A stretch of DNA of 64,000 bases, from assembly GCA_023515725.1 (NCBI GenBank), contig JALDTO010000098.1, forward strand, positions 770,164 to 834,163, given 5' to 3'. The DNA comes from Amoeboaphelidium protococcarum X5. Its lineage: Eukaryota > Fungi > Aphelidiomycota. The notes below the pieces were generated by a model, which saw only the letters and a list, made by a program, of their open reading frames with translations, was not told where the DNA came from and ran no database searches. The position numbers were made by a program, and so were the translations under genes. Shown piece after piece: positions 1,129 to 8,878 of the stretch (position 1 is its first letter; each line of letters begins with the position of its first letter).

Positions 1129-1296
1129 TTTTAATTTAAGGCGGAGAGGTAGGATTTACCACAAAGAAGTGCAAGATGTTTCATTTCATCCCCTAAAATC
1201 TTGAATAATAGGCAATCTGAGTTCGGTGATTGATCGGCTAAGCCACACCAAAGAGGAAGATCAGGTGAGTTGAAAGTATGATCTTAAATAGTGGCA

Positions 1297-1337
1297 TACG
1301 GAATCCGAGAGCCGCAAAAGCGCGTCGCTATTTAAAA
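1297..1337 (+). repeat. Left terminal inverted repeat
   Basis: TACGGAATCCGAGAGCCGCAAAAGCGCGTCGCTATTTAAAA matches the reverse complement of 5742-5782 at 33/41 positions. Confidence 0.85.
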
Positions 1338-2086
1338 AGCAGAAACGAATATTTGTTTCTTACAACTGTTTTTGTTTTTAATGTTCGAGAGCCGCAATCA
1401 GTGCCTCACATTAATACATAACGTTTTTGCACTTGTAATACGCGAATGCGACTTAACAAATTGATTAATTTTTGTGATTACTTTCTTATTTATATCATGC
1501 TGCAAAATCAAATGTATTAGTCATGCACCGTGTGTGTGTTGCTTTACTTTAATGTGCAACTTGCGCAACTGCAGCAGTATTGGTGTAAATATCTCAAGAT
1601 TTTTAATATAGCAGTATTTGCTCCGCTTCTCTAGTAAAGAAATATATGCACCAAACCTCAAGCAAAAATTTGCAAACTGTTTGTGAGTAGTGGTTGCTCG
1701 ATCTTTGTCACAACTGATTGCTTGATGCGTTAATCTCGAAACTGGCGCTTGCAATTTAACAGTAAGTAAGCGATTATTTGTGATAAATTGTTTTGATACT
1801 GAATGATACTTTATTATCTCTTACACACTATTCACTAAACTACTTTTTAACAACGTACAATCTTATTTGCGAGATAAGCATACAGGTATAAGCAATGCAG
1901 CATTGGGACGCCGTAGTGTTGTCATTACTTGCTGCGCCACCCCCCTTACGCCACTCTAAGATCTTACGCAATCATATTATTAATAACAGCTCTCATAGTT
2001 CAGATAACTAAAACGCGACAAATATACGCAATCTCTTTAGTTGATATCTATATCCTAGTGTCTTTTGAATAGAATCAGTATCAAGC

Positions 2087-4102
2087 ATGTTTAATCCGTT
2101 GTAAGATGTGTTATGTCCCAATTCGTCCGGACTCAAAAGGGAGGACTGTCATTGTGCTGGATGTAAATCTTGGCAATAGGCGCAAGCCTAGTTGATGCAT
2201 TCACAAATGCAATTTGAGTAAAAGAAAAAGCTTGCGGTGCAGACAAGAACCGAGTCAATGGTAAATAGATTGCACAGTGGATACCAGACTAAGCCGCCGC
2301 CCCCTGTTCATAGAAACGGTCCTGGTAGTGGAAATAGAGGTTTGACGCGTAAAAACGCGCTGGTGCAAATTAGCATTGTCCCTTGTATTTCAGGATCAAA
2401 GGTTGGATAATTTAAGCGTCTGGAAAATGTTGGCCCATAGATGATTTAGATTGACAAGTATAATGACAATTATCAATCTGTCTTAGCATAAGCTTGTGCA
2501 TTGTTTCACTATCAAGTTGAGCAATCGTCAATTGGACAAAGTCAAATCCACCAAATCCCCTAATTTGGAGTTGATTTTGACGTAATATAATGGACCCAGA
2601 ATATTCAATTGGCAGGATGTAAGTATACCTCTAATAAGGATAAGGTGCTATATTTGATTCCGTTGGTTGAAAGCAATCGCGTGTAATTGCATCCTAGTTT
2701 AAAGAGAAACTATGAGTCTCTACAGTAGCTGAATTTTTTGAATGTCGAGGACTTTGATTACTAGTATGGTTTGCCAGATGAGAAGATGCAGGATAAGGAT
2801 GATTTTGAAATTGTTGAACCGACGCGTACTTTAGATGAGCCTATTATTCAACCTGTCAAGCCTGTCAAAAAGATCAAATCTGCGCAGGAGTCTACGATCA
2901 TACCTGTCAGTTCAAATGTTGCGAGAAATAGTTAGATTGAACATAAGAATAAGTTTTGCTAGTTTGAAAACATTTCCAAGGTGTCCCCTCAGCGTGTAAT
3001 AAAAAATACGCGCTCCTTGTAAGGCAGTGTGGTTGTGCATGTCTACGACTATGAAACAGGCTCCTGGTTCACTGAGGATCCAGGAGTAGTTGGAATGCCA
3101 GATCTGGCAGGAAAGACTAACAAAGGGAATATAAAAAGATGCTACTATAATGGATCTCTGGTCAAGTTTTTTCCAGATCTGCCAGTAGTCTTTAAGTGCG
3201 CAATTGATAAGGATGACGATGATTATGGATTACATGCTAGGGAAATATTAAACTCTGTTTGCGCTCAAAGGTGCTTCCTAGATTTTGACGCGGAATTGAT
3301 TAAGACGCTGCTGGGTTAAGAATATCTATAGGTTGCTGGTGAGTAGCGTGGAGTTTGTGCTGGCGTGATGCTGGAGATTAGAGACAAATAAAATGAGGAA
3401 TTTGGTGATATGGTGGATCTAGCAAAGATATGGACAGTTGAACCCTTCGTAGATGGCCAATTTGTGAAGTATATCGACAACGAGCATTTTATGCAAATTT
3501 GTGATGATGATCAGACTTATGAGGAGAACTTTCGTGAAGAAGTGGCCTGGGCTTTTGCCCATTACTCCTATTATTGGTTTGAGAAGGAGAACTACGAGTA
3601 AATGATAGTTGATATTCAAGGCTCTAAGTGTCACTTTACAGATCTTTAGGTGTGCACTGTCAATGGCACCGATTGCAGTATTGGCAATATGGGTTTACCA
3701 GCAATTGTGAAGTTCTTCGTTATGCACTAGTGCAATTAGATTTGCAAGGCTTTGCATTTAGATGTCGCGACCATTCCGTCTTTAGTAATGGAGAAGATTA
3801 TGGAAGATTCTCTCTTAATGGATAAATTCGAGTCCACTGTGTTTGGATCTCCAGCATAGGCCGCTCCTAATCCTCTTGGATAGTAGAAGACATCATTGAA
3901 GTCGGATGTCTCCATAACTTCTGTGTCTAAACAGGTAGAAGTTAATAATCAAGCCACTCAGGATTTGCAGATAGTAAAGGAGAAATCTAAGATTAAGTTG
4001 GTGGATCCTATTGTTAAAAACATACGTCCGTCTAGCAGAAGACCTAATACGCGTGCTAAAAATGCTGCGTAGAAGAAATTGCCAACTTTGACTGAGGATT
4101 GA
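2087..4102 (+). CDS. Alpha-kinase (eEF2K/MHCK family) domain protein, 671 aa, inside the transposon
   Basis: Single ORF with TAR=Gln. Motifs VVFKC, EPFVDGQFVKY, AFAHYSY, IVDIQG, TDLQV, GNMG and Zn-binding HQCNQIC. N-terminal Cys cluster CPNSSGLKREDCHCAGC. Confidence 0.9.
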
Positions 4103-4187
4103 GTATTTAGTAGCTCTGGTGGAGTTAACAATGAGTACGTAAAGATAGTAATAGCAATAAGAAATTTTTAATTATTCAGACCATTCT

Positions 4188-5567
4188 TCACTAAGCAATT
4201 TCCTACCCTCTCACTTACTATTCTGCTATCAACAATTAATCTCTAAATGCATCCAGCGCGCTTACGAGATCGCCATCGGACACTAAAGCCTTGAACACAT
4301 CTTGACAATTGTCAAAGGTAAGTTGATCAAAACCTTTCTCTATAACAACTTCATCAATAAGATGCCTAGCGTAATTAATTCTAAACCTATCATTCATATC
4401 TATAGTACTTGGTCCAAACAATTGAATAGCCATATCACGCATGTCTTGAGGAGGCTCCAAACCACATTCTACTCCATCAAACATCTCGGGAACTTGATAA
4501 CGCATGATGGGCTGTCCTTGATTTCGAATCTTATGGTAATTCCACAAGGTGGTAATTTTATCTAAACACTCAGCGATATAATGTCCAAAACAATACTGAG
4601 AAATTGTCTTATGAGAATAAAGCGTGGTATTAAAATAACCTGCAAAGTGAAGATTGTTCAGCGTTCCTATCCAATATTCAAGCCCATAATGATTCTATCT
4701 GCCCCAGTAACTTTCTATACGCGTATTGAAATTGGATGAACCCACAATATAAGAGTTCTCACCTACCAATATTTCTTGCAATTACTTGATGTAATTGTTC
4801 TCAGTTCCGCCATCAACACGAACTTTTCCAGGCATAACATTGCATTTGTCAGCCGCATCCAGAAAATATTCCAGTATGTAACGCGCGGGCCTATTCGTAT
4901 CTGCGACCATACTAAACACAACATACCTACTAAAACCATCTACACACGCACTTATTCCAAAGCCAAACTACGACAGCTTATCGAAGCCATCTATATGCCA
5001 CACTTAATTAGGACCATCATTTTAATATTCACGGCGTTTCAACTTGCGCCTTTTACGCATTTACACAGCCTCTGGATTGTCGAATCTTTAGCAAACCATA
5101 ACCATGTCTCGAGATACTTATTGGCCTGATAGTTCACGAAGGACTTATGTAGTTGATCTAATTCCCAATCTTTCACCTTCATCCTGATTTACAACATGCA
5201 CTAAATCCAAAACTTCGACAGGAGATAGCGCACAATGTCTCGTTCCAATTTAATGCTGCGACAAAATCGATTGCAAAGTCCTTAAGGACATTTAAATATT
5301 ATGCTTCTATTTCAGCCAATCCAATAATTATTGTTAAGTGGACCCGCCATTAATTAGATGGCGAGCTTCTTCAATCCAATGTTCACTTTAATCCGCAAAT
5401 GTGGCTCTATTTAAAGCAGTACTCAATCCATGTTCAGTCATAAACCGGTCCAATTTGGACTTGGAGCAGATTGTTCCACTAGAATTTAGAGTATCTAAAA
5501 TTTCCTTGCGCTTCAAACCTTAATTTACTAACTGCCGTACCTGTTCCAAGTCGATTTCTTAAGACAT
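4188..5567 (-). CDS. DDE transposase (integrase core, IS3/IS481-like) with N-terminal HTH/Clr5-like repeats, 459 aa
   Basis: ATG 5567 to TGA 4188. Motifs LKRREYQNDGPNQVWHIDGFDKL, ACVDGFSR, PGKVRVDGGTEN, GSSNFNTRIESYW and WNYHKIR. D-D-E triad appears intact. Confidence 0.9.
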
Positions 5568-5741
5568 TTTGCTGCAAAAAATGAATTCGAGTTAAGATGT
5601 CCCCTATTATAAGGCGGATATAGTGCATGATAAGAAACAAAATAGCAATGAATTTATTTTTAAAATTACAAAACAAAATAAAAATTAAAAATCATTTAAA
5701 ATATTAATGGGAACTTTCATTTTACTTTCTATGTTTAGTAA

Positions 5742-5782
5742 TTTTAAACTGCGAGGCGGTTTTGCGTTTCTCGAACTCCGTA
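5742..5782 (-). repeat. Right terminal inverted repeat
   Basis: Reverse complement TACGGAGTTCGAGAAACGCAAAACCGCCTCGCAGTTTAAAA, similar to the left TIR. Confidence 0.85.
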
Positions 5783-5983
5783 GGGCATTCATTAAGCGAT
5801 TATTATAACATGGAAGCACACACACCCAATAAACCTTGAATTTCTGGTTAATCTCCAATCGGAAAGGCTTTATACAGTTACCAAGAATTAATTTGATGTC
5901 TAATACTATGCAAATTGATTCATAAATTCAAAAATGCGTCTGAATATTAAAAGTTGTAGCATTAAATGTATGGATCTATTTAC

Positions 5984-8878
5984 TCATAGCTACCTTGTCA
6001 CAGCCTATTTGAAGTTTGGATGCAACTTGTTTAGACTGACAACTCCGATTGTATGTTCTTAATCTAAGGTTGAATTCTTGACCAGATTGACGCCAAACTT
6101 CTTCACTCCATCTGCCATTTGCCTTCGCTTATCTTGAGATAGAGATGTCCAATTGTCGAGCTTGTTGTTAGATTTATCCGGTACTGACGTGGATATGACA
6201 TCAGCGTCCCATTTCCAAATTTGATCACCAAGTCTCAACTCTCCTTCAACCACTTTATAAATTGGAGGAAGCAGCTTATGGAGTGAGAGCTGAGTATCGC
6301 CAGCATTATTGGCTGATAGTGCCAAATCGCGTATCATCTGAGCGGGAAGCTTTTTAATTTTACTGATCACCAGAGATTACGGATAACCAAATGGTACTTT
6401 ATGCAGCTTATGAGCTTACTTCTCATAGAAATACAAAATGTCATTTTACACATCGACATCAAATGTAAAATACTCCGGACCATAATCCAAAGACACTCGT
6501 TAAACAAGATCTTTAGAGTTGGCGGCAGATTGCTTGGCTTTGTACGCTTTCATGTCAACATCGGTTCTCTGAGCATTATCTACTTCTAATATCTTTTTAG
6601 GATCACATCGTTTCAATTTGACCTCAGTATAGCGAAGTTACTCGGCTGATGCAGTATATGACAAAGTCTGGGCAGCTTTCTTGCTGTACACTACCATATT
6701 CAAAATTACAAGATTCTTATCCACCAAAAGTTCAGAAGGTAAAGCAATCCTATCAATGTCTGTGCTATCTGGTGACTAAACAGGCGTCTAAGAAGATGTT
6801 TGCCTGTGATCTAAAGGCTTAAGAATCTCAGTAAATACTGAACACACTTCACTCAGCGATAACCCTTCTAAATTACGGCCGTTCACTTCCATCAGTACAT
6901 CGCCAACGCATAGAGAATCATTGGTACTAATACTCCCATTTGAGTCCATATTATCCTATATGTTTCCATTAACATCGAGCTCAATATCAAATAGCGGCTA
7001 TGGAACTGAGACCACTTGAGCAACGTACTTACGCCGCAGATGCCTCACTGTCCAGTCTTCGTGCACTTGAAACTCGAAGCCAATCTTCTCCATCAAAGCT
7101 GTGGTGTTCATTCTATCTTTACCGGTGAACCTGTGGACACGCTTCTATACAGCCTTAAACACATTAGAAGTTGACTGCTGAGGATTGCGATCTGTAATTG
7201 GATTAAGAGACTGACCAAGTTACATGAGCGAATTTCTAAACGAATGCATAAGAGGATTCAGATGGCCATAAGACTTGCTCTTAGAAGTCGGCTGGATGGG
7301 AATTTAAGGCAAGTCTTTATCAATACGGTCATTGGATACTGCAGCAGTATTATTAGAAGAAATCTTGCTATCAATAGGTACTGTTTCATTATTTCCTGAC
7401 TTTTATGAATCTAGAAAGTCATTGATAACTTTCAACTTGTCACTCGGAGTCAAAGAAGCTGATTGCGGAATAATGCCATCACCATCATACAAAATATCCC
7501 CATCAGACTCTTCATTAGACAGCACAGTCACTTTCAATTGACTTTACGCTGGTTTATGAGGCTATTGAGGAGCAGTGACGTTGTTTTGACCATCTCCCTC
7601 CTTGCCCGGTAGACTCTTATTGACATCTTACACAAGAGACACTTCCGTTACAGAAGCATTCAATGTCTCAGTATGGGAATTCTATGGTGAATCAATTTCT
7701 CTAGGCGCTTGCATGACTGTATTAGACTAAGCAACTACTTCTGAAGTAACATTATCATTAACGGGAACATTTAAAGCCTGATTCGATTTCCTGGTACTAA
7801 CTTTGGTCTTGTCAATTTTGTTAAAATGTGCCTTACAGTAATATTGACCGTCCCATGAGTTGTATGTGGCGAGAGTCAACTTTTTTAGACATTCAGCACA
7901 TTTGAGACACTCCGTATGCATGATCTACTTATCCACCAAGAGCTTCTCAGCCGGATAAACTCGTTTCTAACATGCAACGCATAACTCTACAGGTTAAGCC
8001 TGCTTTATGGCATGAAAGGTCCTGGCGCGTTTTAGTTCCACCTACTTCTTGGCTTCTTCTTTAGCTGCAACTTCCTGTTCAGTCTCAGGCTCTTTCTCCT
8101 AGTGATCGGTGCCGCCATTCAGAGCAGCTCGACTCTACTTAAACTTGGCACCCTCCGTCTTTTCAACCATCTACCGCAATTGATCCCAGCTCTGAGTGCG
8201 CTTAAGACCATCACTCTATGCACCATCAATCCTAATCTTGTCCTTATACATCACTGCACCAGTCTCATCATACAATTCATCAGGTAACTGGCCATTCATT
8301 TCATTCACGGCCTTCTCCTCATGTTACTCAAACGCACGCGTTACATCTCTAACTGTCCTTTTCCGATTGAGTAGATCAGAGGCTTTCTCAATAGCAATGG
8401 AACTTTATCCCGCAGTGTCTACATCTATAATCTGTGCGTTATTCACTTTCCAGCCCGACTACAGCCTTTCAGATTATTGCGCTGCATATTAAATTTGCTA
8501 TTACAACAGCGTGGCGTCGATTGTTTCAGCCGTCGATACGATCGGAGCGTCATTGGAAAGCGCCTGTTATTATTATAACTGCAATTTCCTACTCTCAACC
8601 TGCTAGAACCCAGTTGTATAATCACCATTGACATTGAACAGCTGCGTAAAGTGAGGTTTACAGAAATACTTGCCATCCACTGCTGCATAAGTCGAAAGAT
8701 CGAGAATTTTATTACAGATCTAACACCGCAGACAATTTCGGTGCAGAATAGCCTTCTTCAATTACAGCTTCTCCACAGGATACACCACCTTCTGACACTT
8801 GTCACACAAATCTGATGGCTTTGAACCAAACTATTTTTTAGCAGACTTCTACTATGACTCTTCTACTTGATCGCCCAT
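5984..8878 (-). CDS. Protein with two LIM domains and a PDZ-like domain, about 964 aa
   Basis: LIM1 CDKCQKVVYPVEK...HRNCLRCQIC...FCKPHF. LIM2 ...HTECLKCAEC...YCKAHF. PDZ-like LCVGDVLMEVNGRNLEGLSLSEV. Track ORFs 7727-7921 and 6059-6370 are in the same frame. Interior not checked codon by codon. Confidence 0.75.

Follow-up and report, generated by a model that had tools for sequence, protein, structure and literature searches.

The IS3EU superfamily of eukaryotic DNA transposons has been characterised by TA..TA ends, target site duplications (TSDs) that are usually 6 bp long and a transposase lacking HHCC (Kojima & Bao, 2023; PMC10045372), and the IS3EU elements described so far encode two proteins (Wang et al., 2021). 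In fungi, IS3EU elements in which a transposase gene and an alpha-kinase gene are oppositely oriented have been reported (Kojima, 2025; PMC12730594). The rust families of this type present 6-bp TSDs, terminal inverted repeats (TIRs) above 30 bp and TAYGG..CCRTA ends, and their kinase travels with an anti-methylation TET gene (PMC12730594). The kinase-transposase architecture is known only from one passing sentence in that work (PMC12730594), and an element-borne kinase is mentioned neither in PMC10045372 nor in PMC6839031. Full-text literature searches found no study of the function of the IS3EU kinase, and no description of a transposon regulating its own mobility by phosphorylation was found in the literature searched.

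Here, a stretch of 64,000 nucleotides (hereafter, the window) was analysed together with the genome it belongs to (23.6 Mb in 346 contigs). The window contains a TIR-bounded unit with two intact ORFs, both under purifying selection, which is present in the genome as about 21 near-identical insertions with GC-rich 6-bp TSDs and for which empty sites exist. It is likely that this unit is an autonomous IS3EU/GingerRoot cut-and-paste transposon, active now or until very recently, whose alpha-kinase would be a second gene that promotes its spread.

Structure, genetic code and classification

The features of the element are displayed in Table 1. Its two TIRs are identical at 33 of 41 positions, a score that none of 200,000 random 41-mer pairs reached, and TACGG..CCGTA termini are found in all copies. 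The two long ORFs that they enclose are arranged tail to tail, with 85 bp separating the stops. Two candidate GT-AGT splice donors (1683 and 1762) were located by sequence in the leader of the kinase gene, and positions 1764-1881 of this leader are matched at 75% by an older relic on contig C264. An imperfect, AT-rich palindrome (5659-5748, about 90 bp, 72%) lies between the transposase start and the right TIR and might act as a promoter or as a region for subterminal binding.

Table 1. Features of the transposon and its target site, with positions in the window
Feature	Positions	Strand	Basis
Complete IS3EU DNA transposon, 4,486 bp	1297..5782	.	Copies, ends, empty sites
Left target copy, 6-bp GTGGCA, same as the empty allele	1291..1296	+	X8 empty alleles
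Left TIR, 41 bp, starts TACGG	1297..1337	+	
Non-coding leader 5' of the kinase, presumed promoter/5' UTR	1338..2086	+	
Alpha-kinase ORF, 671 aa (code 6)	2087..4102	+	PF02816, motifs, dN/dS
DDE transposase ORF, 459 aa (code 6), D193/D252/E285, without HHCC	4188..5567	-	PF24764 rva_4
Right TIR, 41 bp, terminates CCGTA	5742..5782	-	
Right target copy GGGCA, short by one base (imperfect TSD)	5783..5787	+	Junction confirmed in X3 record 15

Both ORFs were read in genetic code 6 (TAA/TAG = Gln), since each of the seven long ORFs tested contains many in-frame TAA and TAG codons and ends in a single TGA. The assignment of UAR to Gln has been reported for Amoeboaphelidium protococcarum (PMC11687900). 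TAR codons represent about half of the Gln codons in both element ORFs, as they do in host genes; hence, the element has long resided in a host that uses code 6. The window also contains an STI1 gene. Two subgenomes, about 10-13% apart, are present, and the homeologous copy of the region at 87-90% fits a genome that is hybrid or duplicated. Together with genetic code 6 and the genome size, these features suggest that the host is probably the aphelid A. protococcarum, which has a hybrid genome.

Regarding its classification, the termini, TSD, TIR, motif and gene-layout features place the element in the kinase-bearing fungal IS3EU type, of which it is a member without TET. Along with the ends, the 6-bp TSD, TIRs above 30 bp and two encoded proteins, it shows the integrase-like DDD/E transposase of IS3EU/GingerRoot elements, in which the first D is located 100-300 aa from the N terminus and there is no HHCC, and an alpha-kinase gene opposite the transposase gene. 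TSDs of IS481EU elements measure about 4, 15 or 25 bp, unlike those found here. The initial annotation, made from the sequence alone, had described 41-bp TIRs with 33 of 41 identical positions and TAC...GTA ends around two long intact convergent ORFs, and had proposed membership in the IS3EU superfamily; all of this agrees with the present results. Its view that the pairing of a kinase with a transposase was novel did not hold, as this pairing is already published for fungal IS3EU elements (PMC12730594).

Copies, target sites and mobility

Seventeen full-length copies were found across the genome, identical save for one SNP in one of them. Counting all ends (21 left and 22 right) gives about 21 sites overall, further copies being interrupted by a nested element or broken up in the assembly. 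The genome search found no other families or MITEs carrying this TIR within 3 mismatches. An exact 6-bp TSD is present in 10 of the 16 flanked full copies; for each of the other lengths between 2 and 10 bp, at most one copy matches exactly. Three more exact 6-bp pairs join split halves. The TSDs have a GC content of 56%, compared with 40% in the background (p = 0.002).

The window copy lacks an exact TSD (GTGGCA on the left and GGGCA-T on the right) and is one of four copies in 16 with imperfect junctions, which may correspond to the error-prone gap filling typical of the element family. In three copies, the two TSDs differ by a single-base indel. On contig C69, the element is separated from its left TSD (CCGGTC) by a 15-nt filler (L016:1486-1500, left of the element), in which the first four bases of the element directly adjoin its last five. 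Such an arrangement resembles two element ends joined together or a patch left by templated repair.

Empty sites, by which the initial annotation had proposed to check mobility together with a copy count, were also found. The window flanks (300-1296 and 5783-6800) join without the element on the homeologous contig C207 at 87-90% identity, and a second strain (X8) presents two empty alleles at the window site. Because of these alleles, the target can be read as GTGGCA, with the right duplicate short by one base. Moreover, the right junction of the window copy was matched without differences in a contig from the same sample (X3 record 15). The element reaches a depth of about 1,400 in this sample, versus 56-110 on single flank contigs, and of about 65-75 in X8, which is the flank level; taking contig depth as a rough guide, this points to a strain-specific burst.

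Concerning other sources, the element with both genes appears at 99.5-99.9% identity in two metagenomes, where the kinase is partial at a contig end. Runs X11 and X12, in which the share is small, contain short, low-depth exact fragments of the element; these are probably traces of the same organism and hence do not point to horizontal transfer. Two metagenome matches to the TIR pattern were discarded as chance 21-mers in GC-rich contigs. Using short stop-free pieces as queries, no related loci were found in metagenome and viral contigs or by tblastn against plasmids.

The copy at C146:611538-615575 is interrupted inside its kinase gene by a nested element of about 4 kb. This insertion has GG..CC termini, is flanked by a 9-bp TSD (AAAAAGATG) and carries two long open frames, one at either extremity, of 431+ and 447 aa in code 6. 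It gave a weak match to DUF6729 (E = 0.09) and is possibly a Mutator-like or other DNA transposon.

Three insertion sites, in their original state, were part of open frames about 470-560 codons long. Host genes have therefore probably been disrupted by some of the insertions, a loss that homeologous copies may buffer. Furthermore, two inverted copies on contig C142 (23062-361907) carry swapped TSDs (CTGGCT/CGCGTC), which probably record a 339-kb inversion by recombination between them, or else a mis-join. The local burst has reshaped the genome through the insertions in open frames and this probable inversion.

The transposase and alpha-kinase genes

The length of the transposase was counted from the first Met inside the TIR-bounded unit, and its HIDG, RVDGG and RIESYW motifs provide the triad given in Table 1. 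No HHCC pattern was found upstream of this triad. Pfam rva_4 (PF24764) matched the protein at 1.2e-8 on a stop-free piece and with 98 bits when read through, and the C-terminal piece was grouped with eukaryotic rva_4 clusters in the Atlas (0.95-0.96). The search with the stop-free core piece found no prokaryotic match. A homologue search with two short stop-free pieces returned self fragments alone, and the single-sequence fold of the C-terminal piece had a pLDDT of 39.

The alpha-kinase family (PF02816) was recognised at 1e-7 and 32.7 bits on one stop-free piece of the other ORF, and at 81 bits when it was read through, with a cut-off of 21.3. This match spans only profile positions 89-185 because the N-lobe is too diverged, and no Pfam match was obtained for the 300-aa N-terminal part. 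The protein has a Cys-rich start, a kinase domain at about aa 340-558 and a basic NLS-like tail (RPSSRRPNTRAK). The motifs (P-loop G-x-x-K-x-x-Y, VFK370, hinge VEP, FVKY, AHYS, IVD509IQ511G, FTD519 and GNMG) locate the catalytic Lys, Asp, Gln and Asp and the zinc His/Cys ligands. The residues read from them are P-loop K351, K370, Q393, E452, K461, H493, D509, Q511, D519 and the zinc residues H547/C549/C553, where the N-lobe assignments (K351, K370 and Q393) come from motif reading only. The equivalences with MHCK A residues were assigned by motif, in part after the MHCK A numbering in PMC4876393. The best PDB sequence match was 4kuj, a putative protein kinase (E = 0.4), and phmmer with a short query, a 69-aa kinase piece, gave 0 hits against 1.84 billion representatives.

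There are 20 PF02816 matches in the genome: 18 belong to element copies, one to an older relic and one to a host-type gene. Since this host-type alpha-kinase is only 27% identical to the element kinase over about 110 aa, the latter is a standing gene of the element and not a fresh capture. The same search revealed no intact domesticated copy of the kinase outside TIRs. The host-type match itself (C98:489738-490280) contains an in-frame TGA directly before the TD motif, which may reflect an intron, pseudogenisation or an error in the sequence.

Kinase relics with 75-85% DNA identity are present on contigs C212, C233 and C264, broken by a stop, deletions or truncation, and one of them conserves the basic tail. 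Compared with the relics, which comprise kinase sequence only, lie next to neither a transposase nor a TIR and presumably derive from the element, the kinase showed dN/dS values of 0.06 in the catalytic C-lobe, 0.18 in aa 481-664, 0.32 in the tail and 0.26 in aa 285-375, with dS of 0.5-0.7. The isolates differ by 5 replacement and 8 silent changes (p = 0.002), of which 3 and 4 are in the kinase (p = 0.04), the X8 list being incomplete. These data suggest that the kinase is a maintained gene of the element lineage, under purifying selection. The bursting lineage carries two private kinase substitutions, L408 and R483, whereas three other samples have P408 and C483; compared with X8, it also shows two transposase changes and about 10 leader changes.

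Regarding the two genes, the initial annotation was right about a 459-aa DDE transposase with the three motifs above and a 671-aa alpha-kinase. Its term "IS3/IS481-like" is correct at the superfamily level but no further, as the look-alikes of the transposase are eukaryotic. Its proposal that the kinase is a dedicated gene of the element instead of a captured host fragment was supported, considering that every intact copy has the gene, as do three other samples, and that it is under purifying selection and distant from the host kinase.

Possible role of the kinase and comparison with known systems

According to DDE biology, the transposase would bind the TIRs, excise the element and insert it with a 6-nt stagger, and copies would be gained whenever a sister copy serves as the template to mend the donor gap. 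The imperfect junctions would then be explained by repair that is error-prone. In this fungal IS3EU lineage, the alpha-kinase would be the usual second gene; it is predicted, with its basic tail, to be an active nuclear Ser/Thr kinase that aids the spread of the element.

Other explanations were considered. The identical copies could be an assembly artefact, that is, a collapsed consensus pasted into gaps: copy identity is perfect and possibly inflated by consensus polishing, contig C104 consists of bare element, and several copies are cut off by N gaps or where a contig ends. Nevertheless, the distinct flanks with matching TSDs, the empty alleles and the roughly 20-fold element depth in a run of this sample that was assembled independently already refute it as regards the existence of the element and its approximate copy number, and the probability left to it is negligible. 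It is also very improbable that the kinase stems from the recent capture of a host gene or fragment, carried as a neutral hitchhiker or Pack-type cargo. Capture of host gene fragments does occur in GingerRoot elements (PMC6839031), and in a young burst every copy would appear intact whatever its function, but no close host source gene was found in the genome PF02816 search, purifying selection has acted on the kinase both over the divergence from the relics and between isolates, and the rust and truffle IS3EU elements have the same type of partner in the same opposite orientation (PMC12730594).

A somewhat greater, still small, probability is given to a kinase kept for reasons other than transposition, either for host benefit or as a selfish toxin/addiction or effector module such as an eEF2K-like translation brake. 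In its favour, eEF2K is described as an alpha-kinase inhibiting translation elongation (PMC5742810) and the IS3EU-like Styx/REP9 as carrying a gene that alters host asexual reproduction (PMC8232023). Against it, the genome search found no intact domesticated kinase outside TIRs, the element consists of two genes only, with no antidote ORF, and the apparent copy number changes about 20-fold between strains.

Within the preferred reading, a kinase that helps the element to spread, the largest share of confidence, close to half, corresponds to a putative action on host silencing, chromatin or repair factors; in rusts, the kinase travels with a TET gene. A putative action on the transposase or transpososome is clearly less likely, and the remaining share covers other, host-directed or neutral roles. 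A more ambitious proposal, which we hold only tentatively and at well below even chance, is that IS3EU mobility requires the kinase as a trans-acting component of its machinery, or that the kinase is the anti-silencing effector of the element, that the pairing predates the aphelid-fungus split and that the burst may be linked to L408/R483. This last link is only a testable lead beside the transposase and leader changes. The kinase may also be dispensable, because Styx/REP9, a distant IS3EU element, can move and has been described with no mention of a kinase of its own.

A minimal, intronless, two-gene and recently active element is a convenient substrate to study the function of a transposon-encoded kinase. 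If the host is truly an aphelid, the pairing reaches beyond Dikarya, which suggests an old partnership.

[quoted passage not shown] Styx/REP9 of Zymoseptoria is similar to the present element in its IS3EU-type transposase, 6-bp TSD, strain-specific bursts and association with chromosomal rearrangements (in the present case the probable 339-kb inversion), and differs in having four ORFs and no mention of an element-borne kinase (PMC8232023, PMC10853768). IS3EU and GingerRoot elements share with the window element the TA..TA ends, the usual 6-bp TSD, the GC-rich targets and the integrase-like DDE core without HHCC (PMC10045372; PMC6839031), whereas GingerRoot (Cerbin et al., 2019) has TIRs of 100-150 bp and host gene fragments (PMC6839031). 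The IS3EU elements of rusts (Pucciniales) and Tuber indicum, such as IS3EU-7_PSt and IS3EU-1_TuIn, present the same ends, TIRs above 30 bp, a 6-bp TSD and opposed transposase and alpha-kinase genes (PMC12730594). In them a TET/JBP gene is located between the two genes, where the window element has just its 85-bp gap; the latter also differs in its code-6, probably aphelid, host and its intronless ORFs. What is new here is the compact, intronless, TET-free form of this element, its strain-specific burst and its host, which is probably an aphelid.
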